Part shown: piece by piece, positions 6,471-58,998 of the stretch
Position numbering within the stretch: the first letter of the stretch is position 1
Layout of the letters: each line of letters opens with the position of its first letter
Source of the DNA: Podarcis melisellensis
Taxonomy: Eukaryota
Strand: one strand, 5' to 3'
Assembly (NCBI GenBank): GCA_964234715.1
Contig: OZ174279.1
Length of the DNA: 64,000 nt
Notes under the pieces: model-generated
The model's database searches: none
Told to the model about the DNA's origin: nothing
The model's input: the letters and a program-made list of their open reading frames with translations, nothing else
Translations under genes and position numbers: made by a program

Positions 6471-7380
6471 CTATACTCTCTATACGTATGACTGTACAGC
6501 CATCTATTCCAGCAACAAAATCATCAAGTTTGCTGATGACACTACGGTGGTGGGGCTCATTTCAGGAGGGGATGAGTCCGCCTATCGGGACGAGGTGGAG
6601 CGGCTCTGTGTTTGGTGTGGAGAGAACAATCTGGCTCTTAATACGGCTAAGACCAAGGAATTGGTGGTGGATTACAGGAAAAAAAAGGCGGACATTCAGC
6701 CCTTGTATATCAACGGGGAACGGGTGGAGAGGGTGGCGGAATTCAGGTTTTTGGGAGTGACTATCGATCAGGGCATGACTTGGAGCGCAAATACCACTGC
6801 TCTGGTGAAGAAGGCCCAGCAGAGAATTTATTTCCTCAGACTTTTAAAGAAGAACAATCTGAGTGAGAGACTGCTGGTGTCCTTCTATCGAGGCTCCATA
6901 GAGAGCATTCTCACATACTGTATTTGTGCTTGGTTCTCCAGTTGTACAGCTAGGGAGAGGAAGGTGCTCCAGAAGGTCATAACCACAGCCCAAAGGATTA
7001 TTGGTCATCCTTTCCCATCTTTGGAAGAACTGTACGGTTCCCGTTGTCTTAGGAAAGCAAACAACATCCTGCAGGATTCATCTCACCCGGGATACAGTCT
7101 GTTTGCACTACTGCCTTCTGGCAGGAGATATAGAAACATCAAGTCAAGGACAAATAGACTGAAAAATAGTTTCTATCCAAGAGCTGTGGCCTTTTTGAAT
7201 GCTGTAACTCGATAGTGTGACCTGGGAGTTTGATGGGTGTGGGTGTGGGTGTGGCTGGAATGTGGTTTGTTTGGTTGTTGTTGTTGTTTTGCTTTTGTTG
7301 TTTTTTAAGGGATGGCATCCAATTTCGTTGCACTTGTGCAATGTTGCACTTGTGTAATGACAATAAAGAATCTATCTATC

Positions 7381-9086: not shown

Positions 9087-9263
9087 TGGTAGTCTTCAGC
9101 GTTTTGAGACCCAGGACCCGCTTTTAGTCCAAACATTCATTGGGGGGTCTTCTTCTTAATCTTTTACCATATATTTGCATGGTGGTAGTGCTCCTGTTGT
9201 GGCCCACCTTGGATTCAGCTGCAACCCAATAGTGGGTCCCAACTCACCAGCTGAAGACCAGTG
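9087..9263. mobile_element. hAT-type MITE
   Basis: Short TIRs (gtcttcagc/gctgaagac); perfect 8-bp TSD GTCTAATG (9079-9086, 9264-9271). Confidence 0.75.
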
Positions 9264-9527
9264 GTCTAATGGACAGCCTTGGGGCTTAAATTCCTAAAGG
9301 GAGACTTTGGAGAACCGCAGGTCATCCTCCTCTGACCTGGGGTGGGGCTTTCCCCCATCTAAACCCAGTTGTATTGTGTCTAGTTATGGTTACTTAGAGG
9401 TAGGAGAAAGCACTCTGCACATGCTCTTAACCTGATCTTTGTGCCATGCCCATTTGGAGCAGGAAGTGGGGTTTCTTCAGGAGGAGCAGCTGTGTTTCCG
9501 ACAACAGAGGTGTCACATGAAATACAA

Positions 9528-9668
9528 CAGGGATGGGGAACCTGTGGCCCTCCAGACATTGTTGGACTCCAGTTCCCATCAGCCCTCTGCCAGTATGGCC
9601 CAATGATCAGGGATGATGGGAGTTGTATGCCAGAAACATCCAGAGGGCCACAGGTTGCCCCACTCCTG
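9528..9668. mobile_element. Palindromic hAT-like MITE. Representative of a family with further copies near 257, 1148, 7735, 10925, 13870, 27795, 35325, 39232, 43918, 44820, 51657, 54405 and 55808
   Basis: CAGGGATGGGGAACCTGTGGCCCTCCAGA...GAGGGCCACAGGTTGCCCCACTCCTG; 8-bp TSD AAATACAA/AAATACAG. Confidence 0.75.
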
Positions 9669-10458
9669 AAATACAGAATCGATACCTTCTAACTTTAATG
9701 TAGCTTTCAGTGCATCCAAGTTCCCTGCATCAGAAGGTGCAAAGAAGAGGCTGCAAGCTGTGGGGGCCAATGCATTAAGAGGGCGGAACCAACAGAGAGA
9801 GAAAAAGGGAGGGAGGGAGGGTAGGTGGGTGCCTGCCAAGTGCTGACACTTAAAACCTCAGGAGCAAAGCGAAAGCAAACTGGACAACATTTCAGAGTCT
9901 CATCTCTTCTTTCCACCCCCAGATTTATGGGCTCAGTATTCTATACTGACAGAAGCATTTGTTGGTAATCCATTTGTGAATTTCCTACTTGCTATTAATG
10001 AATTCAGAGTGATGTCGCTTATTTGTTATAAATAATTTCTGAAGCACTTCAGTATGTCAGGTGTTTTACTACTCATCATCTCACTTGCCTCTCTGTCCCT
10101 GTGAAGTAGGTCATTGCAATTTCCGTTATAAGGACAATAAGTCAAGGCTGAAGTCCTTTCAGCAGGATCAAACAAAAGTGCCCCAGCCACATTTCCTGAT
10201 TTGTGTGATGCTCTTGCAAATTTGAATCCAGTCCTAAGAGTGCACTATTGCTGCTGTTTCTCCTTTCCCCCTTTTTGGAGTAACTCCCACTAACTACATG
10301 TAGTCCATCACACAGTGGTGCCAGGGCAGGTCTTCAGAGCAGGAGTCCAGGGCCTCACTCAGCAGAATGGGTAGCCCCCTCCCAAATATGCAGCAGGAGG
10401 GGGGACTCACCACAGTGTGCAGGAAGTGAAGCAACATACATTGCCATTTAAGAACCCC

Positions 10459-10810
10459 TTTGTTTAGTCGTTTAGTTGTGTCTGACTCTTCGTGATCCCA
10501 TGGACCAGACACGCCAGGCACTCCTGTCTTCCACTGCCTCCCGCAGTTTGGTCAAACTCATGCTGGTAGCTTTGACAACACTGTCCAACCATCTTGTCCT
10601 CTGTCGTCCCCTTCTCCTTGTGCCCTCCATCTTTCCCAACATCAGGGTCTTTTCCAGGGAGTCTTCTCTTCTCATTAGGTGGCCAAAGTATTGGAGCCTC
10701 AGCTTCATGATCTGTCCTTCCAGTGAGCACTCAGGGCTGATTTCCTTAAGAATGGATAGGTTTGATCTTCTTGCAGTCCGTGGGACTCTCAAGAGTCTCC
10801 TCCAGCACCA
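10459..10810 (-). mobile_element. RTE-BovB LINE 3' fragment
   Basis: RVPRTARRSNLSILKEISPECSLEG...YFGHLMRR...LEKTLMLGK; 11-bp TSD TTAAGAACCCC (10448-10458, 10811-10821). Confidence 0.9.
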
Positions 10811-11384
10811 TTAAGAACCCCCACCCACTCATAAAACCACTAAGTCCTGTTTTTACATTTGCCAGCAAATGAAGGAGGGAGGGAAGAGAGGAAGGAAGGA
10901 AGCATCTCATGGATGCTATCATTCAAGGATGATGGGAGTTGCAGTCCAACACCTCCCATCTTCCCCGATCATTGGCCATACCAGCTGGCGCTGATAAGTG
11001 TTGGAGCCTGACCACACCCAAAGCTTCCCCATTCCTGATGTACCCAGATGATTCATGCATTGACCACGGGGTTAGATTTGATGGCCCCCAATGTCTCTCC
11101 CAATTCATGATTCTGTGAACTCAAGGCAGCTGAGAGTTGGTGGGTGGATGTAATTTTGATGCCTTTGCTGCTTATTTAAGTTTTAGTTGCTGCTGTTTGG
11201 ATGAATGTGCCAGTGCTGGAATTGTGTCTAGGACCCCAGCAACATGGGAGCCAGGCATGGACTTGTGAACTGAGGCAGGAGAGCTGCAGGCAAATGAAGA
11301 CTAAGAGCTGGACACCAGGTTCTAGGACACAATAGGTCAGGGGCTGTGAAGAAGACTGGAGAGAGAAGCTTATTCTGTATTCTA

Positions 11385-12925
11385 TACCGTCTACAATATG
11401 TTTGTCCACACTGAACATGCACAGCTATTGAGATTGCCATCTGTGCAAAGTGTCATATTTTCTCAGGTCTTATATTTCTAATATGGGGGAGTGTGGGAGT
11501 GATGTCCCTGAAACATAAGGCCATCTTCCATGAAAGGCATGTGAACTGTGTTCAGCAAAAAAAAAAAAAAGTAATTCTGGAGAAAAGTGGAATATGTATG
11601 TCCTGTATTAACCAAAAAGGAGCCTGAAAAGTGTAAGCCATTGAAAAACCACAGAAGTTAAGTATTCAGTCTATCTCTTGCTATTGCCTGACCAGACACA
11701 ACTTGTGTAGACAGTTCCTTGGAAGTGCTGATCAACCGGCATTCTTCATCTCTCACTGGGATGACATATATACTGCCGTTTGTTCTAATTTGCAGTTTTA
11801 TCAGAATGCTTTGATTGGTTTCCAGAAGCACCTGGCTCCTGAGATTATAAACTATACCTGGAAATAGGAGCAGGAAATGTAACCCACATACACTTCAACC
11901 TGCTTGATCTATTCTTTACAAGAGTGGGCCATGAGATCCTTATGTGTACACCTTATAAAAAATAAATACTTAGGCTTCACATCAGTTTCGAGTTGTGGGA
12001 TGTGAGGGTGGGAGGGAGTGTGTGGGAAGATAGGGGTGGGAATGTATGGTGCATGTGAACCATCTACTGTATTTATGTACATGGAATTAGCTTAAATACA
12101 TGGTGTGGCGATGTCAGCAGTCTTGAGCAGGGTGCTAGGGTGAAAGCAATTAAAAATTAAGGTTGCACAGATTTTTTTGAGCTTTAAATTTGGGCATGAA
12201 AATTAAGCCTCCCTTATTCAGGAAGAGGAGTGTGTGATTATTAGTGGTCTTTTGCATCATTTTCCTTCATGCCTTCTGTCATGCATCTGCTAGAGGAGTC
12301 CTCCTCAGATGAAAAATTGCTGCTCCCTGGGGGGAACCATATGGAGGAAGAAGTGAGGCAGACCCAGGCCTATCAGACTAGACTGTTAACATCCCAAGCC
12401 TGGGCTGAGCCACCTCCAGGCCCTGCTAAGCTATCTACCAAGGAATGCAGGAGTTGTTTCTCCAACCAGGAGTTGCCCAATCCTACATTTAAAGCCTGAA
12501 TCTCTTGTGTCTGTAGTGCGATGCTAACTGCTACGTTCCAGATTCCTCTGCTACATAATGCTGTTCTGTACTTCAGTTCTTACCAGACTTCCCCTTCTCT
12601 TCCCGATTTCCTCTAGGCTGCGTTGTCACATGCGTGTCCTTCATTTCACCATCCAGGTTTCTAAAGTATGGGTGGTGGGCTGCTGTGGGAGTGATGAAAT
12701 CCACTTGGCCACTTTATGGCTAAGAAAGCACGGTGGTGTGAGGAATATTGTCCCAAGTCAGTGTCACTAGCTCCCACTAATTTGGTGCCAGACTATTATT
12801 GTCTTGAGGGTCCCCGAGTAGATGTGGGTCCCCAGATGTTTCTTGCCTACCACCCAAGTCCTTGCACAGCACCCCCTGAGTTCTGCTTCATCCACCTGAA
12901 AAGCATCCACCCCACAGAACCCCTA
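11385..12925 (+). repeat. Copy A of a diverged local duplication (copy B at ~16233-17297)
   Basis: Colinear similarity over ~1 kb; copy A has ~450 bp extra (12190-12635). Confidence 0.85.
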
Positions 12926-12987
12926 CAATTAATGCAGGATGTTAGAAGGAATTTTGCTCTTGCATTTGGATCTGAGCAGCTTGCCGT

Positions 12988-13008
12988 TTCAGCACCCTGG
13001 ACAGTTCA
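12988..13008 (+). promoter_or_regulatory. RE1/NRSE (REST-binding) site TTCAGCACCCTGGACAGTTCA
   Basis: Both half-sites (TTCAGCACC, GGACAG) with the canonical 2-nt spacer. Confidence 0.8.
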
Positions 13009-13869
13009 TGTGCTTCATTACCAGGCACATAGAAGGCCTCATTATTTTAAGAAACATTTTAAAAAGAAAAATCTGTGAAAAGGAGGGTAGGAACAGAAGG
13101 TGTCTACAGCCAAATACAGAGAATTCACCCCTGTGAGATTAAATGCTTAACTCTTCACAATCCCAACCAAACCATGGCCTTCCTTTGAAGCTTCATTTCC
13201 CTACATAGTTTTGCAATTAATATGCTACAGATTTGTGGAATGGAAAGGGTGATTCAATTTAGGGCTCGGCTGCGTTCAGAGACAAGAATAGGCTCAGTCG
13301 TAAATCCTTTTAATGTTATCTCCCCTGACTTCCCAGAGTTCTTTTGCTCACCTGCATGGAAAGATGACTTGCTAAATCAAAGACGAATTTATAATAATTG
13401 TGAATTAGATTGGAGAATCAGTGCAATGATAAGCCTTAGCAGGCTAATACGTCATTTTGCATGCTTCTGCATTTGCAGTGTTAATTTTGCAGCTACAACA
13501 AGTGACACCTTGGTCACAGATAAGATGGAACCATATGTAATGGTAAATTAATAGCAAACCCTTTTTTAAAAACAAAAACAAAAAGCCTTCACTGTTTCAA
13601 GGAGTGTGTATTTGAAATTACACATTCATTAAAGAGAGAAGTACTTTATTGCATATGTAGGCATTGAATGGATCCAGCAATGTGGAATCTTCCTTGACTT
13701 TAGCCCACATGTTTGAATAGTTGCTCCAGGTTCTTGAATACTGTAGGCAAGTATTGCTCTTAACTTCGCTTGAAGAAGTTTCCCCCTTATTGTCTCTGGT
13801 GCTTCCAGACAAGTTGCTGCGTCATTTACATTCCAGTCTCATTTCCCATATGACATTCATGAGGTAAAG

Positions 13870-14007
13870 TGGGGATGGGGAAACCGTGGTCCTCCAGATG
13901 TTGCTGGACTCCAACTCCCATCATCCCTGCCCATTAACCATGCTAGCTGGGGCTGATGGGAGTTGGAGTCCAACAACATCTGGAGGGCCACAGGTTCCCT
14001 ATCTCTG
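13870..14007. mobile_element. Palindromic hAT-like MITE (same family as 9528)
   Basis: Whole-element hairpin; degenerate 8-bp TSD aggtaaag/aggtagaa. Confidence 0.7.
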
Positions 14008-16144
14008 AGGTAGAAGGTGTGTTTTGTATGAATCAGTGTGGATTACTCAACCTTTAACATCCTTTCAGAAGGTTAACCCTGTGAGTCCATTGCAGCACAA
14101 ACAACAAAAGCACTTGCGGCACCTTAACCTATGTAAACCACTGAACAATAGTCATTTTCCTTTTGTGGCAAAGGGGTAACATTTTCAATGCATATTAATA
14201 CGTGAGTCGGAACTTAAATGCACTGCTGATTGTGAATAGAAATGTTAGGTAGTAATTGTTCTAACTAAATGAATCTGCTTTAGAATCTTGTTATTCATAT
14301 GTGTCTGAACGTGCATGTTCCATGAGAAACTATTTTGAGTTTGACAGCCAGCATGATGGCTGGCAGTGAGGTAATTTACATTCTAATGTTTAAAATTTGT
14401 TTGGTGGTTCCACAACAAGATGACCAGCTTTACAAAAAAAATATTGCTTTTAATAGTCTTCTACATTTTTGGAGATTTCATGCCAGCCGAGTGCATTAAT
14501 TAGTTGTTGTTTTTCAAAAGAAAAGAAAGAAAGTTCAAAAGGTTTCATCTTCCTGAAGCACAAAAACAGTTCTGTTAAGTAATTCTGAAGGTTTTGGCCT
14601 TGGTTATTGCTAGGAAACCTGAGCAAGGGAGGTTTCCAGATGGAGGAAGGAGAGAAGATTCCTGGCACATGGCAGGGGAAAGATCTGATCTGAAGCCAGG
14701 GATTAGAAAGATGTGCTACAAGGGGATGCTGAACTATATGCCCTTGTTTGTGGTTGTCCAGGTAGACTTTAGCCACCAGAGGGTGTAATGAAGCTGCATT
14801 TTAGAGCAGTGCTTTTGTTTTGTTCTGTATCTCCCCAAATATCATTCTGGCCATGTTTAGAATTTTGTTAATCCCTTGAATAAATTGCACTAAGCCTTTG
14901 TTCTCCTGCCTTTGTAGTTTTGTAGCTTTGTTATGTGCAAAATCTCTGTTCCCCTCTGCTTTGACTATTTGCTATCTTGTTCTTTTTGTTTATCTTGTTC
15001 TGTGTTATCCACCTTGTACTAATCTTCCCAAGCACTAATGCTAAACAAGCAAACAACATGTTAACAATAAATCATTGGAGCATGAGATCCCACTAACCCA
15101 CATCTCCTTTGCAGTACCTGGCATGGAGATCACAGCACTGTTGATTAATCTGGAATTATTCCTGGATCTGTGCTTGCAGTCCAACTCCATTCTAAGTATG
15201 CCTGGAAAGAGTGGGAAATCTTTTGCATTTAAACACTCATATTGTGTGAGAACAACAAGGTATTTAATAGTTGTTAAGGAGTAACACTATCATGTCATGC
15301 GATCCTGTATGTGTATGCCCACAGGTGGCTCTTAATTTATGGGTCTTGTTCTTTAAGTGGACTTTTCAAAGTGGTTAATTCTCAGATTGCCTCCAGGCTG
15401 TCAGTATTTTATGTGAGTGATTCAAGTGCCTACTGGAAGTTTAGGTTTGCACTCTGCCCACATAGTGGATAAATATCACTATTTATTTATTTAACTTTTT
15501 GCTGCTAGGAAAGTGACAGGGAAATGCACTGAAAAGTGTGAGATGAACAAATGACACAGGAAGATGGATAAAAAGCGCACAAGCAAATCAGGACAAATGC
15601 TCATTGTCATATAACCACCCCATAAACTGATCAGGACAAACGTTCAACAAAGACTGGACACATTCTGACCTTCTTCTCGGGAGGAGCCCGCGTTTTCATG
15701 CAGTGATAGCATTTGACCACTAGAGGCCACTCTGGTGTGTGCCTGTGGGATCTTGCTGTCTCCTCCCCTCAAGCAGGGAGCCCAGACTGGATATTGACAG
15801 CAAAATTTGTGGCTTCAGAATAGAACACAAAGAAGGTTGTTGGTGTTCAGGTCTTGGCTCGTGCATGCAGCAATCAATTTTCATCCATTCACACATCAAT
15901 GTAAACAGCATCACTGGAGTATATGAGAAGGACCGGCTCCTAAGGTCCTGATGGATTATAGACCAGGGGAGTACATTGCTTCCCTCCCCTCATGGTGAAT
16001 TCTGTTTTAAATTGAAAGCTAATTGGTAGGGAGGAGGATAATGTTGTTTGCCCTTTGGACTCTTTTTTAAAAAATTGAGCTGAATGTTCTCTTGTACACC
16101 AAGGTTGCACTGGTGAACAACTGTGGCACGCAACCAGGGAAGGC

Positions 16145-35678: not shown

Positions 35679-37654
35679 TTTTTTTATAATAATATTTATT
35701 TAAAAAAAATTTAAACAGTAAGAAAACATACGAAATACCATATAATTTTTCAATATCCACATTTCATTCACCTCATTGGACTTCCTCACAACTCTCTTTC
35801 CTGCATTCCAAATTCTCAAACTTTACCCAGCAATTTATTACCTTGTTTCAATTCTTATAATATAATTTTCCAATATTATATCCCTAATTTTAGATAATTT
35901 AGATCCCGACTTTAAAAACTTAATTTTAACATAGTATTTATCCAAAATTTATCTTTTCTTTTGATTACATTTATCTTCATATTCCTTTTAACTAACTTAT
36001 TGGTGCCGTATTGTTGCTAATCTTACATCTTTCTTAACATTCATACAATTTACAGTGTTTTTGTAAATAGTCCTTAAATTTCTTCCAATCCTCCTCCACA
36101 ACTTCTTCTCCCAGGTCTCGGATTCTGCCAGTCATTTCCGCCAGTTCCATATAGTCCATCAGTTGCATCTGCCATTCTTCCAGTGTGGGCAAATATTGGG
36201 TTTTCCAGTATTTAGCAATGAGTATCCTTGATGCTGTTGCATACATAAAAAAAGTTCGGTCTTTCTTTGACACCCTCTGGCCGACAATGCCTAAAAGAAA
36301 GGCCTCTGGTTTCTTAGGAAAGGTATACTTAAATACCTTTCAGCTCATTATATATCATTTCCCAGAAAGCCTTGACTCTAGGGCAGATCCACCAGAGGTG
36401 AAAGAACGTTCCTTCAGTTTCTTTACATTTCCAACATTTATTATCTGACAAATGGTATATCTTTGCAAGCTTAACTGGGGTCATGTACCACCTATATACC
36501 ATTTTCATAATATTTTCTTTCAAGGCATTACATGCCGTGAATCTCAGGCCGGTGGTCCATAACCTTTCCCAGTCAGCAAACATAATATTATACCCTATGT
36601 CCTGTGCCCATTTTATCATAGCTGATTTGACCATTTCATCTTGTGTGTTCCATTTTAGCAGCAAGTTATACATTCTTGAAAGTATCTTAAAACTGGGTTC
36701 TAACAGTTCTGTTTCTAACTTTGATTTTTCCACCTGGAATCCTATCTTTTTGTCCAACTTAAAAACTTCTTTAATCTGAGCGTAATGTAACCAATCTCGC
36801 ACTTTATCTTTTAGTTTCTCCAAACTCTGCAACCTCCAGTTATCTCCATCTTTTTCTATTATTTCCCAATATTTCGGCCATTTGGCCTCCATATTGAGTC
36901 TTTTCGGGGCCTTAGCTTCCATTGGTGATAACCACCTTGGGGTCTTATTTTCCAGTAAGTTTTTATATTTTATCCAGACATTGAACACTGCTTTCCTGAC
37001 AATATGGTTCTTGAAAGCCTTATGAATTTTAACCTTGTCATACCACAAATATGCATGCCATCCAAAAGCATTGTTAAATCCTTCCAAATCTAAAACATCA
37101 GTGTTTTCAAGAAGCAGCCAGTCCTTCAACCAACAGAAAGCTGCTGATTCATAGTACAACTTTAAGTCTGGCAGGGCAAAGCCCCCTCTTTCTTTAGCAT
37201 CAGTTAGTATCTTAAACTTAATTCTGGGCTTTTTGCCCTGCCAGACAAATTTAGAAATATCTCTCTGCCACCTCCCAAAACACTCCATTTTATCCACAAT
37301 CTGTAAAGTCTGAAACAAAAACAGCATTTTTGGCAATACATTCATCTTTATAGCAGCAATACGCCCTACAGGAGCCAGAGTCAAGTACCAAAAGGGTATT
37401 GCAACTGATTTATGAGTTTGGTCGGGTGGCGGGATTTAAACTTAACAAGCAGAAAACCAAGGTTCTGGAAAAAAATTTGACATCTTTAGAATCAGAAAGG
37501 TTTCAGAAAGAGACAGAGCTAAACGTGGTTAAAAAGTAAAATACCTAGGGGTAAACATAACAGCGAAGAATATGAGTTTATTTAAGGATAACTATGAAAA
37601 ATGCTGGTCTGAAATTAAAAGGGATTTAGAAGTTTGGTCAAGATTGAAACTTTC
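35679..37654 (-). mobile_element. L1-clade LINE, 5'-truncated with 5' inversion (junction ~37366-37368)
   Basis: Minus-strand ORF2 C-terminus (GRIAAIKMNVLPK, GGFALPDLKLYY, CWKC...HLWWIC); T tract at 35679; plus-strand RT segment 37366-37654; 19-bp TSD CAAGTACAGGAATATCTTC (35660-35678, 37655-37673). Confidence 0.92.
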
Positions 37655-50336: not shown

Positions 50337-53099
50337 ATGCAACCACAATGGCTATGCACAAACACCACGACCTCTGCTGCTGTTTGCTTTCCCACATATC
50401 TTCACAGGGAAGTGCTGGGTACTGTATTCAAATGGGTTTTGTTTGCCTCCCTTTCATTCTTGATATTACTGTTAAGGCTAGCAGTCTTATGTGCAACTAC
50501 TACTGAAACATCTGCTGTGGTTCATCTCTGTGTCAATATGAAGTATTCAGACTCTTCATTGCAAATGGGATCTGAAGTCTTCCTTCAAAAGTGCAGCAAG
50601 CTTGCTTCTGGTCAGCTGTACAGATGCCACATAAAGAGAACCCTCCTTAAAAGTTGCTAGAGGCATTGATTTTCCAAGAATAAAATGAGGACAAATGAAG
50701 CAATCAAAACAGTATCAAAGTCTGGGTAGGGAGCTGGCCCTGATTTTATACCTAGTGTAGCATCAGGCTCTCCCAAGTTAGGTGTTGCAAGATTGCCCCC
50801 CCCCCAGTTGGGAATCTGAGTGTAGTGCAGTGTAACTTTCTCCCAGTTCCAGTCACTACACAGAGGCAGATTAAGGTCCAAAACAGTTTACTGCTGCAAA
50901 AGATCAGGTCTCAGTAATACAGTTCCAGATGTTGACATATGCATGCAGCCTGTAAGCTTTGCAGATACAGATACATACAAGTAGAAAATATCTATGTTGC
51001 TCCAGCAATTCAAGACATAGACACAGACCCATTGACTGACTGATGAGCTAACATGCCTTAATCAAACACACACACACGACACTGGGCCATAGGAACTGGC
51101 TTTGCTGACCTTGCATCTGTTGGCTTATGTCAGACATGGGGTGATTTGTGGCCATGAAATAAATTAATGCCTTCATGTCCATTTCCTCCAACATTATCCT
51201 CCATAAATTTGTCTAATCCTCCTTTAAAGGCATCCAAGTTGGTGGCCAACACAGCCTCCTATAGGAGCAAATTCTATAGTTTAACTATGCACTTGCATGA
51301 AGTGTTATTTTATCTGCCCTGAATCTTCCAATCAGTTTCATTGGATGTCCATGAGTTCTACTATTTCACCAAAAATGCATCTGTGGCCTGCCAAGGTCAA
51401 TGCTGCAGCTTTTGGAGGACTGGCCATGCCACCTCTGGGGTGGGGAAGGTTGCAAAATGGAGAGATTTGCCTCTTCCCACCTCTTGCACCCTTATGATCC
51501 TGAAAGAGCAAGGGTCCTAAAACACAAATCTATAAACAGAGTGCCATCTAGTGACCAATGGATGCAACAGCATCACCCTATAACATTCACTACTCCTTGC
51601 ATACTAAGAACTCAGCAGAAAGTTGAAATGGGTGGTCACATAACTCCCTATACCATGGATGGGGAAGCTGTGCCTCTGCAGATATTGCTGAACTCCAACT
51701 TCCATCAGCTCCAGTCATCATGGCTACTGGTCAGGGATGAGAGCTATAGTCCAACAATATCTGGAAACCCACAGGTTTCCCATCCCTGCCCTATGGTGTG
51801 AGGAGTCATTTTCCAAGAAGAGAATAAAGCAGCTCAAAATTAAAGAGGCTCATACTTGTGAGGAACAGAAGTCATTGATGATATGGTGTGTCTGGTACTA
51901 ACACAGAGAAGCTGCCCAAAGTACCAACAACTCTAGTGCAAGTGGAGAAAAGAAAGTGGCTAGTCGAAGCGAACAGCATCAATCAGATTTCATCTCAATT
52001 GTCACACAGGTGTTTCTTTTATTTCTGAGACAAAAAGCCTCACCATCACAGAAACTTTTGATCTTAAAGTTGCTTGTTTCTACACATCAGATTACGATCA
52101 ACCCTATCTGAAGCCTAAAATGATACAGAGAAAAAAGCAAACAGGATGCAAGTATTTATTATTTGACAATATGAAAATGTTAAAGCCAAGCAGACATAAA
52201 ATAAAGCAACAGCAAAATAGATGTTCAATCACACCCCTATGAAATTCTAAACCATCCTAAGTATTTGTAGTCAATTCAATTTTTTTAATGACTAGTTCCT
52301 CAAAAAAGGAACTAGATTTTCTATTATCCTTTCACTATCAGCACTTAGAATTGGGCAATATAAAAGTGTTACATATGCAAATAAAGTAATGACAATTGTA
52401 CAGAAAAGCAGCAATCTTTCCTCAGTAAGGTTTGCCAGGAGACCACTATGTTACTAGTCCAAACATAAAGCTGTACTCTTGCCAAGTAAGCAACCCTGAA
52501 AAGCTAGTAAAAGACCAGCTCAGTCCAAAACATGACAAGATTCTGTCGTGGCTCCTCCCCTCACCCATCTTGTCCTCTCACTCACCAGACTCTGTCCTGG
52601 CTTCACCTGCATCGAATGCAACCCTGCTCTGCCAGAGAGGTGGCATTTTTCAAAAGGAAAACAGTAACCAAGGGAATACGTCAGTCAAGCACATCTACCG
52701 ACATTGGAGATTATTGTTCACCCACCGGAAACGGGCAAGACTTTTCCAGGAGCAACCTAGGTGTCCACTTTCTTTTAAGAGGGGTTGGGGTTCTACAGGG
52801 TTTCAGACAGACGCCTTTCCCAGCCCAGCCTGTCGGCGTCAGAAATAGAACTATATGCATACAAAGCGTTTACTCTGCCAATGAGCTTGCAGCCCTTTCC
52901 CTGTTCGATATTTACTTCATTTTTATCCAACTTTTTAGCCAAGGAGTTTGGGCAACTCAAAGCCTCACACACACTGGGGCGGGGGAGGAGAGCCGCCAGA
53001 ACAACCCTGTGAGGTAGGCTAGGCTGCGAAAGTGACTAGGAATGTCACCGAGTGAGCTTCGTGCCTGAGCTGGAATTGGAAGCCAGGTGACAGTTCAAT

Positions 53100-54300
53100 C
53101 ACTGAACCGCCTTGGTTCGCTATTCCTGCAGCCGGCCTCTCCCTAGAGGTGAGAAGCGTGCTCTGAGGCGCGCCGTTAGCTACCCCTCAGGTCTACGGAG
53201 GCCCCAGCCTAGAAAAGTAGGTCAAACCTCAAGGCAGCGGACCACAAGCTCCTCCTTCTCCACAGATGTGCAGCGAGGCGGAAAGTCGGCGGTGGAGAAG
53301 CCTACCGCTTTCGTGCGCTTACGCAAGACTCCGCCCCTTGCGCAGCGTTTAATCAAACAAACCCCCCGTGGCTACGCTCTGCGCTTGCGCCTTAACCCCC
53401 GCTACTTTGTTTATTTCCCCTCCCGCGTGCGCAGTAGCCTCCTACGGGGTCCGTTCAGTAGCTACGCATGCGCTCCAAGGCCGCTGCTCAGAGCTGCCGT
53501 TGCTCGCCTGCGCAGTGGGCCGCGATCTCGTTTTCGCGCGTGCGCATTGACACGCCCCTCCCCCTGCCGGTCCCTCGCGCCTGCGCGGTTAGGTAGTTTT
53601 CTCAGCCGCCCTTCCCCCACGTCCTTTTCGTTCGCTCAAGCAGCTGCTTTGTTGGACTGCTCGCCCCTGCTCCCTTCGCCTGGCGCGCGGTGGGAAGGAG
53701 GTGGAGCCGCACGTGATCAGCAGCAGCGGCCCCGGTTGGCAGTCGAGCGAGCAGGGCGGTTGGTTCCGGCTCGGACCGGTTGGGGCTGGTTTTCCCCGCG
53801 CAAGCGCAGCCCGCCCCGGTTAGAGCGCAGGGAAGGGCGATGGCGGCGGACGGGAGTCCCGGAGCAGGCCTGGCGGGGATGGTCGACGAGGCGCGGGGGG
53901 AGCCTCAAGGCACACCTGGCCCCAGCCCTGTGGCTGCCGTCGCCTCGCCCAACGAGGCGTCCCCGGCGAGACCCGACCCGGCGGGCCCCGAAGCGGATCC
54001 CGACAGCGGCTCCGGAGCTGTGGGCAACGGGGGCCTTCGGCGGTTCCTCTGCGGCGTCGTAGAAGGTAAGGGGAGAGCGAGGGGCTGCGGGGCCGGGCGA
54101 ATTCGCGGTCGAGAGCGAGGAGGAGAGGCCGTAGCCGAAACAAAGCATCCCCGCCTCTCCCTCCAGCGCCGTCTCCTCCTCCTCCCCGCTCCATTTTCTT
54201 CTGGCTCCGCCCTGGGAATGAAACCTGGCGGCGGAGGGTTAAAACCGTTTGCTCTCCTGCGGTAAAGGCGAAGCTGCCCCTTTCAGTGCATCGGCCTTCC
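53100..54300 (+). promoter_or_regulatory. OGA: OGA CpG-island promoter with clustered NRF1-like sites (e.g. 53380-53390, 53464-53473, 53536-53546, 53577-53586) and E-box CACGTG (53710-53715)
   Basis: Very high GC/CpG density against a CpG-depleted background; repeated GCGCNTGCGC-like motifs. Confidence 0.85.
53840..54065 (+). CDS. OGA: OGA (MGEA5, O-GlcNAcase) exon 1; second in-frame ATG at 53879
   Basis: Ends RRFLCGVVE G|GTAAG as in vertebrate OGA; which ATG is used is uncertain. Confidence 0.9.
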
Positions 54301-54524
54301 AATTCGCTGAATTTAAATGCTGCAAACTTCCGAGCCACATGTTGGTTCTTCCGTTCCCTGGTTGGTTCTTCAAGTACCAGTGTTATGCTGCTGCCTAGAC
54401 TAGGAGTGGGAACCTGTAGCCTGCCCCCCCCCCCAGTTGTTAGAGTCCCACCAGCCCTAGACAGTATGATCGTTGGCAGGCTGTCATGGGAGATATGTCC
54501 CACATAATGCTCATGGGGTCTTGA

Positions 54525-55485
54525 CTGGCAGTGAGTCACCAGGAACAAGACCTTGGGGTCATAGTGGATAGCTCAGTGAAGATCTCAGCCCCATTGTGCA
54601 GCAACTGTGAAAAATGCAAATTCCATGCTAGGGATCATTTGGAAGGGATTTTAAATAAAACGGCTGATATCATAATGCTGTTATACAAATCAGTGGTGCA
54701 ACAGCTTTAGGAATACTGAATACAGTTCAGGTCACTTCACCTCAGGAAGGATATTGCAGAGTTGAGAAAGTTTCATAAACGGTCATCCAAAATAATCAAA
54801 GGGGTTGGGAAACTCCCCTTTGAGGAAAGCATACAACATTTGGGATTTCTAGTTCAGAGAAAAGGTGAATAAGAGATAGCATGAAATTGTATAAACTATC
54901 TGTGATTTGGAGAAAGTGGATAGACAAGTTTTTCTTCCTCATACTTCTGGTACTAGTGAACATCCAATGAAGCTGAACATTGGGAGATTTAAGACAGTCA
55001 AAAGAAAGTACAGTATTTTTCCATGTATAAGACTACGTTTTTTTCCTTTAAAATAATGTCAAAAATTAGGGGGCGTCTTATACACAGATACATCTTCCCC
55101 CTTTTTCTTAAATCTGGGTCCCCAAAATAGGGGGCGTCTTATACATGGGGTGTCTTATAGACGGAAAAATACAATACACACAGTGCATAGTTGAACTATG
55201 GAATTTGCTCCCATAGGAGGCAATAATGGCCACCAACTTTGATGGCTTTAAAAGAGAATTAGATAAATTAATGAAGGACAAGGCTATCAGTGGCTGTGAT
55301 CCATGATGGCTATGTTTTGGCTCCATTATTGGAGGCATATACTTCATACTGTTTGCTGGAAACCGCAAGAGGGATAAGTCCTCTTGCTCTTGGGTCCTGC
55401 TTCTGGGTTTCTTGTAGGCATCTGGTTTGTTGCTGTGAGAACAGTAGGATGGACTAAATGGTCTGATCTAGCAAGCTCTTATGTA
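54525..55485 (+). mobile_element. Degenerate CR1 LINE 3' fragment, interrupted by a MITE
   Basis: Decayed RT C-terminal coding sequence (gaccttggggtcatagtggatagctc...) and CR1 3' UTR; boundaries approximate. Confidence 0.75.
55011..55174. mobile_element. Tc1/mariner-type MITE nested in CR1
   Basis: Imperfect TIRs CAGTATTTTTCCATGTATAAGAC / GTCTTATAGACGGAAAAATAC; TA on both flanks. Confidence 0.7.
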
Positions 55486-56909
55486 ACCTGTAAGGTATCA
55501 TGTTGGCTACCTCTGAATCTGGAGAGGTGGACCTGCAGGCTTATGAAAGGCGTGTTCCTTCAGCTTGAAGATATAATCTTGTTCACAGTTGGTGGTAGAG
55601 GAGCATGCATGAATTTTGATCTAGCATAGATTTAAGCTGTGAATATCAGCCTAAATCTAAAGGTTGGTGGTTTTTTTCCACCCACACAGTAGGTGTTGTT
55701 AGCTGTGGTGTTACATGATTTTTTTCTGTGGCATGTTGTAGGTTTGTGGTTTTGATGAGATCTCAATATGGAAAAGGAGGTTTATTTACAGCTTGATTAA
55801 TATAGAAAAGGGGTAGCTAATGTGTCGCCCTCCAGAAATTTTAGACTGAAATTCCCATCATCCTTGAATATTGGCTATGCTGGCTGGGACTGATGGGTAT
55901 TGGTATCACATTGGCTATCCCTAGATATACACACTATCTGTATGTGTGCCTACTTTGTGGGAGAATTGAGAAGTCAGATGGCTACCAGATGTTGTCAGGA
56001 ATTAAATAGGTTTATTAAATCAGTCATGATTTGTGTATATGCAAAATGCCTCTTCTAAATAGCAACTTCTATTACAAGGTGTATATATTGTCTCATGCCA
56101 GTCATGTTTGCACTTTTGTGAAAGTACAGCCAGGCACAGACATAACTCCCCCAAACCCTTTGTTCCTGGAGTGAGAAGCTTGTAATGAAAACTGCCATAT
56201 TGATGGTTTTGGCAACCGGAGAAGAGCATAACAGCTTCCCACGCTGGCAGTTGTCTGAGTATTTTTGCAGGCACTGTCGGGGGAGGGTTCATTCTTACCC
56301 TCCTTACAATCATGTTTTAAAACACTCTAGCTCCACTTCTGATTTAATGCTTTGCTTCAGGGCTTAAGTTGGGTTTTAAAAAATGTGAGCTCAGGAGGCT
56401 ATTATTTTTGACTGGGCTAGTAGCCTTGTAAAAACTTGTGGTTGCCAGGACCCTGCCTCTCCCCTTGTCCCTCTCCCCAAGTTACTGGAATAACATGATT
56501 GTGAATTGGCTGTTTGTGAATGGGCACTTGCTGAGATGTAACGTTCAGGACCTGTGTGCATTTTTCTGTGAGTTACCCAGGTGCATGGATTCCATTGGTA
56601 ACAGATTTGGAAAGGCGGCTTGTGTCATAGTCACTATGATGGCAGGCCTCGTTCACATCAGGGAAATGAACTGAGTGTACATTAGAACAGATTTTCAAAA
56701 GGTCATACTTTGCTCCAAGAAATGCATTCCAGTAGTGCTAAACAGGACATAAGTTCCAACATGTATCATGCATACAGGTTTGATCTCGCAGCATTTTACA
56801 CTGCCGTACTTGTTTATATGTAGCGCTTCAGGCACTACTTAAAGGAACAACTGAGGCCTATTTATTTCAAACCCACTAGATGCAGCTTTGGACAGCTAAC
56901 TTGTACAAG

Positions 56910-57676
56910 TGTCAGGGTTTCTGGGAGAGAGGAGGAGATGACAGAGGAGACGGAGAGCGAGTGGGAGGAGGGGCAGAAGGATGAGGAAGAAGATGACGGA
57001 ATTCTGAGGGAATCCACGAGTCTGAGCAGCGAGTCAGAGGATTCTCAAAAGGGGGTTACCTTAATCAAGCAAAGGGGAGGAGAAGGGAGAAGCGGAGAGG
57101 AGCCCAGTGGAAGACAGAGGAAGCAAGAGACGTCTCAGCCGGAACGGAGTAAAGGGGGTGGAGTCGTCAGCCTCTCGGAGGGAGCAGGATTAGGAGAGAA
57201 CAGAGAGAGGGGGTTGGAGCAGGGTGTTCAGCCGGAAAGGGTGGAGAGCAGAACAGGGGGTGGTGTAGCGGTCGAAAGAAAGGTCAGCAGCAACGTACGC
57301 GCGCCAAGTTCAAACGTAGAGGCGCGCGGAAGTGGAGAGAGCTCAGGGGAGGAGCCCGGCCCTAAAGCCAGAAAGAGGGGGGAAGAGGCGGCAGAGGATT
57401 CAGCCTCAGGCGAGTCACGGAGAGAGGGAACCCAGGGGGGCAGGAAGACCCTGCGGAAAAGAAAGGAGAGGAAGAGGTGGTCTAGAGCCAGGCTATTAAG
57501 TTGGTGCGGAAGAGGGGAGGAGTCAGAGGGGACTTCAGCGGTCTAACGTGGCAGACGTACGGCCACAATGCTGAACTGTATGAGAAGCAGAAATCTTCAA
57601 TAAACTTTTCCTGTAAATAAGCTGCAACGGAGTGAGGTCTCTTGTGAGCTGGGACCCGTCCTGGGTGGCCGTGACA
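56910..57676 (+). repeat. 5' LTR (TATA-like TATTAA 57494-57499, predicted TSS 57525, AATAAA 57599-57604)
   Basis: Direct repeat of 58006-58772 with no differences seen by eye; terminal inverted TGTCA/TGACA. Confidence 0.93.
56938..57546 (+). CDS. Hypothetical 202-aa U3-encoded ORF (acidic N-terminus, basic C-terminus), 5' LTR copy
   Basis: ORF track; uninterrupted; no recognised homology. Confidence 0.35.
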   Translation: MTEETESEWEEGQKDEEEDDGILRESTSLSSESEDSQKGVTLIKQRGGEGRSGEEPSGRQRKQETSQPERSKGGGVVSLSEGAGLGENRERGLEQGVQPERVESRTGGGVAVERKVSSNVRAPSSNVEARGSGESSGEEPGPKARKRGEEAAEDSASGESRREGTQGGRKTLRKRKERKRWSRARLLSWCGRGEESEGTSAV

Positions 57677-57678
57677 GT

Positions 57679-57689
57679 AAGTCCCCTCT
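57679..57689 (+). other. Self-priming primer-binding site AAGTCCCCTCT
   Basis: 2 nt after the 5' LTR; exact reverse complement of AGAGGGGACTT at 57525-57535 inside the LTR. Confidence 0.85.
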
Positions 57690-57696
57690 CCCAAAG

Positions 57697-57880
57697 CAAA
57701 AATTTTTTGCGTTGCTCACCGCCTTAGATTGGCCAAAGGACAGTAAACCGGTCAGAGATCTTTTTTGGGAGGGATTGAGCCCCCCCATCAAGGATGAGAT
57801 CGCTAGGGGGGACAGACCCCAGACCCTAGAAGACGTGGTGCACCGGGCTTTAGCTATTGGAATTCGACATGAGGGGCGTC
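57697..57880 (+). pseudogene. Gag (capsid C-terminal-like) remnant KFFALLTALDWPKDSKPVRDLFWEGLSPPIKDEIARGDRPQTLEDVVHRALAI
   Basis: L-D-W...F-x-E-G-L-S-x-x-I-K-D-E...P-x-T-L-E pattern resembles Ty3/Gypsy sushi/PEG10-type Gag; no pol sequence present. Confidence 0.7.
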
Positions 57881-58000
57881 CGTGGCACGAGGAGGACGGG
57901 CCCCAAGCGCGTGCGCAAGCAAGGACTCTCCCTTTTGTGCACAGGGACTTCAGCCGTGCGCACCCCTCGCCAATGGGGAAGGGGGGGCTTCGAGGGGGGG

Positions 58001-58642
58001 ATGGATGTCAGGGTTTCTGGGAGAGAGGAGGAGATGACAGAGGAGACGGAGAGCGAGTGGGAGGAGGGGCAGAAGGATGAGGAAGAAGATGACGGAATTC
58101 TGAGGGAATCCACGAGTCTGAGCAGCGAGTCAGAGGATTCTCAAAAGGGGGTTACCTTAATCAAGCAAAGGGGAGGAGAAGGGAGAAGCGGAGAGGAGCC
58201 CAGTGGAAGACAGAGGAAGCAAGAGACGTCTCAGCCGGAACGGAGTAAAGGGGGTGGAGTCGTCAGCCTCTCGGAGGGAGCAGGATTAGGAGAGAACAGA
58301 GAGAGGGGGTTGGAGCAGGGTGTTCAGCCGGAAAGGGTGGAGAGCAGAACAGGGGGTGGTGTAGCGGTCGAAAGAAAGGTCAGCAGCAACGTACGCGCGC
58401 CAAGTTCAAACGTAGAGGCGCGCGGAAGTGGAGAGAGCTCAGGGGAGGAGCCCGGCCCTAAAGCCAGAAAGAGGGGGGAAGAGGCGGCAGAGGATTCAGC
58501 CTCAGGCGAGTCACGGAGAGAGGGAACCCAGGGGGGCAGGAAGACCCTGCGGAAAAGAAAGGAGAGGAAGAGGTGGTCTAGAGCCAGGCTATTAAGTTGG
58601 TGCGGAAGAGGGGAGGAGTCAGAGGGGACTTCAGCGGTCTAA
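58001..58642 (+). CDS. Hypothetical U3-encoded ORF, 3' LTR copy; extends to a strong-Kozak ATG at 58001 beside the PPT (213 aa)
   Basis: Same frame as ORF 57857..58642; gggATGG context; stop is followed by AATAAA at 58695. Confidence 0.4.
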   Translation: MDVRVSGREEEMTEETESEWEEGQKDEEEDDGILRESTSLSSESEDSQKGVTLIKQRGGEGRSGEEPSGRQRKQETSQPERSKGGGVVSLSEGAGLGENRERGLEQGVQPERVESRTGGGVAVERKVSSNVRAPSSNVEARGSGESSGEEPGPKARKRGEEAAEDSASGESRREGTQGGRKTLRKRKERKRWSRARLLSWCGRGEESEGTSAV

Positions 58643-58772
58643 CGTGGCAGACGTACGGCCACAATGCTGAACTGTATGAGAAGCAGAAATCTTCAATAAA
58701 CTTTTCCTGTAAATAAGCTGCAACGGAGTGAGGTCTCTTGTGAGCTGGGACCCGTCCTGGGTGGCCGTGACA
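58006..58772 (+). repeat. 3' LTR (AATAAA 58695-58700)
   Basis: Direct repeat of the 5' LTR, preceded by the PPT and followed by the TSD. Confidence 0.93.
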
Positions 58773-58946
58773 ACAAGTTTACCTCTTTAGTTCTTACTGT
58801 GCCCTAATTAAAGTTGCTTAACAAATGTATATAATGAATTATTAAACTAATAATTATTAGTTTATTATGGCTTAGATGTTGCACTTGATATTTTGTTAAG
58901 AAGCAGCACAATATTTGAAACTGTCTACCATCAATATTTCCCACAG

Positions 58947-58998
58947 GATTTTATGGAAGGCCTTGGGTTATGGAACAGAGAAAAGAGCTTTTTAGAAG
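58947..58998 (+). CDS. OGA: OGA exon 2 ([18 protein letters not shown])
   Basis: GH84 GFYG motif; canonical splice sites; 52 nt. Confidence 0.97.

Follow-up and report, generated by a model that had tools for sequence, protein, structure and literature searches.

Intron 1 of the O-GlcNAcase gene (OGA), within a 64,000-nucleotide stretch of Podarcis melisellensis DNA (contig OZ174279.1 of assembly GCA_964234715.1; hereafter the window), contains an element bounded by long terminal repeats (LTRs). We regard it as quite likely a very recent, integrase-mediated, internally deleted and non-autonomous copy of a self-priming Ty3/Gypsy family of the Tf1/sushi type. The element measures 1,863 bp in total: two direct LTRs of 767 bp each (56910-57676 and 58006-58772), 100% identical in a base-by-base extension, account for 82% of its length, and the interior between them (57677-58005) spans only 329 bp. 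Both LTR copies start with TGTCA and end with TGACA. The pentamer ACAAG on either side (56905-56909 and 58773-58777; probability of a chance match 1/1024) is a 5-bp target-site duplication (TSD), which shows that the element was inserted by an integrase. Direct LTRs, TG...CA ends and a short TSD, the structural marks of Ty3/Gypsy elements, are all present.

The element is also young. CpG dinucleotides reach an observed/expected ratio of 0.68 for the LTR and 0.64 for the interior, whereas the 5 kb to the right have 0.15 and the window as a whole 0.22. Two unchanged LTRs give a 95% upper bound on the age of about 2 million years (My) at 1e-9 substitutions per site per year and of about 1 My at 2e-9, rates that are assumed values and not species-specific measurements. 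The element marks very recent LTR-retrotransposon activity in the host genome. The window contains no runs of N, and no second copy of the element was found within it. An earlier note on this DNA had described a very young, non-autonomous Gypsy-type element in OGA intron 1, with identical 767-bp LTRs, the 5-bp TSD, a 329-bp interior making up the remaining 18%, a polypurine tract (PPT), a short Gag remnant, no pol and undecayed CpG. LTR alignment (0 mismatches), the TSD, the CpG ratios and the homologies reported below uphold this description, although the note overlooked a self-priming site and a 202-codon reading frame in each LTR. The features of the element, including the unique 3' (U3), repeated (R) and unique 5' (U5) parts of the LTR, are as follows.

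56905-56909 (+): left TSD, ACAAG; matches 58773-58777
56910-57676 (+): 5' LTR, 767 bp; 100% identical to the 3' LTR, 68-75% identical to the LTRs of the related sequences L001, L003, L005, L006 and L007
56938-57546 (+): open reading frame (ORF) of 202 codons in U3, 5' LTR copy; read as the C-terminal tail of Pol in full-length relatives
57494-57499 (+): TATTAA, a TATA-like box and putative promoter, 31 nt 5' of the self-primer start
57525-57535 (+): self-primer AGAGGGGACTT, the presumed first 11 nt of the transcript and start of R; reverse complement of 57679-57689
57557-57566 (+): 5' arm, in R/U5, of a helix resembling the U5 inverted repeat (U5-IR); 10 pairs with 57665-57675, 98% paired
57599-57604 (+): AATAAA polyadenylation signal in R; CAATAAA is invariant in six of six aligned copies
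57665-57675 (+): 3' arm of the U5-IR-like helix, at the LTR end; helix 3 of the alignment fold
57677-57710 (+): leader stub; aligns with the leaders of L002, L003 and L004 and ends in TTTTTTGC (57703-57710)
57679-57689 (+): primer-binding site (PBS) AAGTCCCCTCT, self-priming type, without tRNA complementarity
57697-57974 (+): Gag remnant in the frame of 57679, without stop codon or AUG start; about residues 171-267 of a 358-aa Gag
57975-58005 (+): PPT region; junction 2 lies at about 57972-57977
58006-58772 (+): 3' LTR, 767 bp; identical to the 5' LTR
58034-58642 (+): U3 ORF, 3' LTR copy; the copy that the element RNA would carry
58773-58777 (+): right TSD, ACAAG; matches 56905-56909

Gag remnant, full-length relatives and the self-priming site

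The interior is open in the frame of 57679 across all 109 codons. Pfam recognizes no family in the 109-aa translation or in the 202-aa product of the LTR ORF; the sole match (P8, E 0.058) is noise. An exhaustive HMMER search aligned residues 7-103 of the interior frame with residues 171-267 of P0004, a protein of 358 aa (E 1.3e-33, 65% identity), and the domains Ty3_capsid, Retrotrans_gag and zf-CCHC are found on P0004 and on weaker matches. The remnant, which alone has no Pfam match, is recognized as Gag of the Ty3-capsid type through this homology. The window copy lacks the gag AUG, the zinc knuckle and pol altogether.

The relatives available for comparison were sequences of Podarcis lilfordi (L001, L003) and Logan contigs, including L007. 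The nearest kin are those of P. lilfordi, which, like the TE content, is consistent with the lizard element that the earlier note supposed. P0004 belongs to a cluster with a P. lilfordi member, and the contig of that member, L003, carries a full-length relative at 9092-15620, whose LTRs (784 and 780 bp) are 98.6% identical to each other and whose TSD, GGATC, is likewise 5 bp long. It encodes gag, protease (PR) and the reverse transcriptase (RT), RNase H (RH) and integrase (IN) in the order PR-RT-RNaseH-IN, together with an SH3 domain of the Tf2-1 type; the best match of its Pol in the PDB is Ty3 Gag-Pol (E 7e-128). This relative sits inside a non-LTR RT-like ORF (..FADDTKL..; L003:8720-9124), and directly after it (L003:15777-20849) comes a second element of this family, more divergent and with its own covarying primer and PBS; the arrangement is nested and the contig unplaced.

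Aligned with the full-length relative, the interior of the window element resolves into three pieces: about 34 nt of leader, a middle part of gag (corresponding to L003 gag at 10543-10740) and a polypurine region of 31 nt. Junction 1 falls in TTTTTTGC (57703-57710), an 8-mer that in relatives is found in the leader as well as at the codons for RFFALL in gag. Junction 2 lies near 57972-57977, in an ..ATGG.. stretch common to gag and the region before the PPT. Splicing as the source of the deletions was rejected, as GT..AG boundaries are missing from both junctions in the relatives. The window and L007 agree in all of the last 27 nt that precede the 3' LTR, and L003 differs by one extra G in the G-run; this near-invariance of the PPT stands against an identity of 68-75% across the rest of the LTR.

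Reverse transcription of the family appears to be primed by its own RNA. The PBS AAGTCCCCTCT starts 3 nt past the 5' LTR and is the exact reverse complement of AGAGGGGACTT in the same LTR; chance alone would yield about 2e-4 perfect 11-mer matches over the LTR as a whole. A PBS of the tRNA type was rejected: there is no TGG start, and neither ARAGORN nor Rfam gave a match above chance. The blocks of primer and PBS are both conserved in L002-L005, and the spacing between them is constant at 149-154 nt. The window, L003, L005 and L006 show a perfect 11-nt complement, which comes in three sequence versions; in L006, AGACGGGTCTT pairs with AAGACCCGTCT, and in the second element of L003, AGACGGAGCTT pairs with AAGCTCCGTCT. 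A single change in L004 yields a G-U pair.

RNAalifold, applied to six copies, predicts the 11-bp helix of primer and PBS as well as a 10-bp helix between 57557-57566 and 57665-57675. Pairing amounts to 100% in helix 1 (primer/PBS), where three pairs have changes in both partners, and to 98% of cells in helix 3 (R/U5 to LTR end), where four pairs do. For the structure as a whole it amounts to 94%, versus 38-47% with the partners slid, and none of 500 shuffles reached the observed covariation. In the Tf1/sushi group, the primer is generated by RNase H cleavage after nucleotide 11. Self-primers are known in this group from yeast and vertebrates, and self-priming of Tf1 also needs a U5-IR-like structure (PMC7175516, PMC6317226, PMC3601003). 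The absence of a tRNA-type PBS and the 11-nt 5' segment complementary to a PBS beside the 5' LTR agree with this group, and at the level of sequence the arrangement is Tf1/sushi-type self-priming. The family copies supply covariation support for such priming in a squamate element. TATTAA, also present in L006 and replaced by a weaker CTTAAA in Podarcis copies, would act as the promoter.

By the tests run, the element is a Ty3/Gypsy retrotransposon of the self-priming Tf1/sushi type, a class assigned from sequence features and homology. With Tf1 and Tf2 of S. pombe and the vertebrate sushi-type chromoviruses it shares the 11-nt complement at the expected positions, its covariation and the U5-IR-like helix, and relatives of the window copy carry an SH3 domain of the Tf2-1 type and a chromodomain-like segment. 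Unlike these elements, the window copy no longer has any pol, and of gag only a minor part remains.

Three solo LTRs of a related family lie in telomere-type CCCTAA arrays of P. lilfordi (L001:9778-14769; OX395127.1, ~3.95 Mb). The TSDs read for two of the three, CTAGC and GTAAC, are 5 bp long. Their position may hint at a preference for insertion into repeats or heterochromatin.

Origin of the internal deletions

The window copy retains the parts that act in cis: TG..CA LTRs with U3, R and U5, the TATA-like box, self-primer and PBS, AATAAA, the U5-IR-like helix and the PPT. Two deletions at short homologies would account for the ~4.7 kb lost. One part of the loss is the 5' half of gag; the other begins at the 3' end of gag, takes in the zinc knuckle, PR-RT-RH-IN and the chromodomain-like region, and ends shortly before the PPT. 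The likeliest cause would be template switching by the reverse transcriptase, twice and at short homologies, either in this insertion cycle or in the RNA of an ancestor, and Gag-Pol from full-length relatives would have copied and inserted the element in trans. Both the mobilization in trans and the timing of the deletions are inferences.

The element is a non-autonomous internal-deletion derivative, and a derivative of the template-switch type fits best among the categories compared. Like the internal-deletion derivatives of other LTR retrotransposons and retroviruses, it keeps the ends needed in cis, has lost its coding interior and shows junctions at short homologies; we see no essential difference. 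The earlier note had called it TRIM-like. Miniature terminal-repeat retrotransposons (TRIMs) measure less than 1,000 bp in total and have repeats of 100-250 bp and a PBS complementary to a tRNA (PMC6934838). The window element resembles them in being non-autonomous and in having a short interior, framed by direct terminal repeats, that opens with a primer site and closes with the PPT. It differs in its length of 1,863 bp, its 767-bp LTRs, its self-priming PBS, the gag coding sequence that remains and the long ORF in each LTR; none of the TRIM limits on length, repeat size and tRNA PBS applies to it, and the term does not hold. Large retrotransposon derivatives (LARDs) have a non-coding interior of several kb between their LTRs, and this category was rejected for an element with an interior of 329 bp. 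The element itself is ordinary in kind, and both the self-priming structure and the fully coding U3 of its family have precedents.

The explanation that competes most closely is a full-length insertion that later underwent two chromosomal deletions, by microhomology-mediated repair or replication slippage, so that the mini form was never mobile. Such deletions also produce junctions in short homologies, and no other copy with the same interior was recovered, in collections that lack the source genome. Yet this course needs two events (~0.6 kb and ~4.1 kb) within the time, less than ~1-2 My, over which 2 x 767 bp of LTR stayed free of substitutions; both would have spared precisely the PBS with its leader and the PPT, and the usual fate of an insertion is instead a solo LTR formed by LTR-LTR recombination, as in L001. 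We consider it improbable, and deletion before or during integration clearly the more probable course. Far less credit is due to an assembly artefact, in which reads of a high-copy family were mis-joined or collapsed into a chimeric short element or a duplicated LTR. Perfectly identical repeats are a classic source of such errors, but here a perfect 5-bp TSD lies within unique intron sequence, the interior is colinear with the full-length relative (leader, gag, PPT), the junctions are in register at homologies, the frame of the gag remnant is intact, and a mis-join is not expected to place a correct PBS and PPT beside the LTRs. Very unlikely as well is an older insertion whose LTRs were homogenized by gene conversion, so that a divergence of 0% overstates its youth. 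Conversion between the LTRs of one element is known in principle; exchange between them would, however, leave the interior unprotected, and the CpG ratios of LTRs and interior (0.64-0.68) are both well above those of the surrounding intron (0.15-0.22), with the gag remnant free of stops over 109 codons.

Several points weigh against a recent insertion of an already deleted, trans-mobilized copy. The microhomology junctions suit genomic deletion as well as they suit template switching, and the identity of the LTRs could in principle come from gene conversion. Identity to the nearest kin retrieved is no more than 68-75% for the LTR and 65% for Gag; the real autonomous partner in the source genome did not turn up, and the junctions had to be placed by comparison with distant kin. 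The placing of the first transcript base at 57525 draws only on the TATA spacing and the analogy with Tf1. Only ~34 nt of leader are left, and therefore a packaging signal may have been lost. Finally, a second copy with the same 329-bp interior was found neither in the window nor by homologue search nor in metagenome and viral scans, which is not evidence of absence, since the source genome is outside these collections.

A homologue search with the junction-spanning ORF 57712-58077 returned no match. Exact DNA scans were likewise empty, in metagenome contigs for the junction of gag and PPT and for the LTR-end/PBS motif, in viral contigs for the self-primer block. A blastn search of a phage collection was without match, as expected, and is uninformative; a scan for bacterial promoters and terminators was empty and is irrelevant to a eukaryotic element. 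Two candidates for further mini elements were rejected: P0012, an 88-aa Gag fragment, comes from an ordinary contig of gag end and pol start, and the LTRs of L001 are not LTR-short-LTR units but solo LTRs with their own TSDs within the CCCTAA arrays.

The coding U3 of the family

Each LTR contains an ORF of 202 codons from its ATG (56938-57546, repeated at 58034-58642). The frame holds 211 open codons; shuffles matched for composition gave 87 +/- 23. Homologous sequences occur as 'hypothetical proteins' of P. lilfordi and as ORFs of Logan contigs, and the ORF is intact in L005, L006 and L007. In frame-blind nucleotide alignments, third codon positions show about twice as many differences between lineages as the others. 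The U3 of the window and that of L007, for example, are 74.7% identical, with 42, 41 and 78 differences at the three codon positions (p = 3e-4) and a single indel of 21 nt. The indels among the ORFs of L005, L006 and L007 (3, 3, 3, 9 and 18 nt) are without exception multiples of three. The Nei-Gojobori dN/dS ratio (nonsynonymous to synonymous rate) is 0.17-0.30, a value that is somewhat flattering owing to the protein-guided alignment. These patterns show that U3 is under coding constraint.

The relatives indicate what the frame encodes. In L003, the frame in which the chromodomain-like segment lies (..EILDSRWGEEGVEYLL..WVPDYALEEPLLKDEFHALFP..) continues for ~150 codons, after which it passes across the PPT (GGFEGGMDVR) into the LTR; the continuous stretch of this Pol tail frame is 14233-15198. 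P0014, from the independent Logan contig L007, is an uninterrupted ORF of 415 codons that extends from the chromodomain-like segment across the PPT and the entire U3, and P0016 of P. lilfordi crosses the boundary of PPT and LTR in frame. The window has the same frame at its PPT and LTR start (GGFEGGMDVR) as L003, P0014 and P0016. In the context of a 3' LTR, the Pol frame thus enters from upstream and does not start at the Met of the ORF. It stops ~20 nt into R in full-length members, in P0014 just past the self-primer. Judged from these frames, U3 is the 3' end of pol in the full-length members; the continuous polyprotein frame across the PPT in the relatives speaks for architecture only and not for membership of a clade.

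A U3 that is both promoter and Pol coding sequence explains several peculiarities of the family. The earlier note had called the LTRs unusually long, a judgement that cannot be sustained: at 767 bp, next to 780-784 bp in the full-length relative, they follow the family norm, and they owe their length to a U3 that forms the 3' end of the Pol frame. For the same reason, the LTRs are purine-rich and can be aligned over deep divergence, and LTR sequence has been annotated as protein. P0001 and P0016, annotated as 'hypothetical predicted proteins' of P. lilfordi, are really LTR U3 or pol tail plus U3 and not host genes.

Neither the frame of P0014 nor that of L003 has a match to Pfam Chromo; a pairwise comparison (E 5e-8, 34% identity) does align residues 6-58 of P0014 to the part of P0006 that Pfam assigns to Chromo. 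For the ~200-aa tail encoded by U3, no Pfam or PDB relative was found. The tail is of low complexity: its first half is acidic and Ser-rich, and its end is basic with a RKTLRKRKERKRW motif. By analogy, one might guess at a role in chromatin tethering or nuclear import.

In comparison with other Tf1/sushi elements, the family of the window element differs in that its Pol frame spans the whole U3 and in that its chromodomain-like segment is too divergent for Pfam. A precedent for the first feature comes from plants. In the CRM, Beetle and Bingo chromoviruses, the polyprotein ORF, which codes for a C-terminal integrase module, continues into the 3' LTR; in CRM, the LTR encodes the CR motif, which is a putative domain for targeting (PMC3059260, PMC3605345). 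CRM group A, Beetle and Bingo (Beta vulgaris) are, unlike the present family, plant elements with tRNA-Met primer sites. The chromodomain-like part of our family, moreover, lies upstream of the PPT, and its LTR encodes a low-complexity tail of ~200 aa without a known domain. We therefore treat the likeness as an analogy of architecture and claim no homology. A shallow literature search found no description of a Pol ORF that reaches the 3' LTR in a vertebrate element.

A bolder hypothesis can be put forward, which we hold to be rather doubtful. The family might have turned nearly all of its U3 (~615 bp) into coding sequence for a C-terminal Pol/integrase tail of ~200 residues under purifying selection, a vertebrate counterpart of the targeting motif encoded by the LTR of plant CRM elements. 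Each LTR, even a solo one, would then carry a Met-initiated copy of this ORF, and the mini element, with an RNA of ~1.2 kb that holds the cis signals and an AUG-initiated tail, could both parasitize its autonomous partner and express the tail alone. If true, a tail expressed alone might, for example, compete for the chromatin tether of the integrase.

A GC-rich block within the U3 ORF (57296-57331 and 58392-58427; GCGCGCGCC-AAGTTCAAA-GTA, read ..RAPSSNVEARG..) scarcely varies at any of the three codon positions among the copies of the window, L001, L003, L005, L006 and L007, with 60-75% identity in the rest of U3. In the window it contains an 8-bp GC inverted repeat, whose right arm is not kept in L005 or L006. 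The block looks like a cis-regulatory element overlaid on the coding frame.

The host gene and other features of the window

OGA lies on the + strand, and the element is inserted in intron 1 in sense orientation to the gene, its end being 169 bp from the downstream exon 2. Exon 1 ends at 54065 (..RRFLCGVVEG) with the donor GTAAGG, and the second exon is the following.

58947-58998 (+): OGA exon 2, 52 nt, with an AG acceptor and a GT donor on its flanks

Further OGA exons are located at ~60.2 and 61.9 kb, and the latter matches O-GlcNAcase chains of the PDB with E 4e-19; all exons were read and searched one by one and not as a spliced model. A CpG-rich block with a GC content of 0.53 surrounds exon 1 (52000-54500) and is presumed to be the promoter CpG island. 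It is because this block inflates the value that the left flank of the element shows an observed/expected CpG ratio of 0.58 over 5 kb.

The element brings potential processing signals into the intron. The sequence ACA|GTAAGT at the LTR end and PBS (57674-57682) is a consensus 5' splice site in sense to OGA, and two AATAAA signals (57599-57604 and 58695-58700) lie in the same sense upstream of exon 2. Together they could lead to premature termination or cryptic splicing of OGA transcripts. The insertion is a candidate polymorphism, possibly of use as a population marker, and a possible modifier of the transcripts of OGA, an essential-type gene.

Other repeats are present in the window. Also in intron 1, inverted-repeat arms of 26 nt, 85% complementary and 118 nt apart, enclose a 22-nt direct repeat (55008-55177); this is a small hairpin-forming repeat or one resembling a miniature inverted-repeat transposable element (MITE). 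An open frame of 351 codons on the - strand (36329-37384) has the look of the C-terminus of L1 ORF2 (..CWKC..HLWWxCP..) and is probably a fairly young LINE-1 fragment. Another open frame of 222 codons (6547-7215, + strand) resembles the C-terminal part of the reverse transcriptase of a non-LTR retrotransposon.

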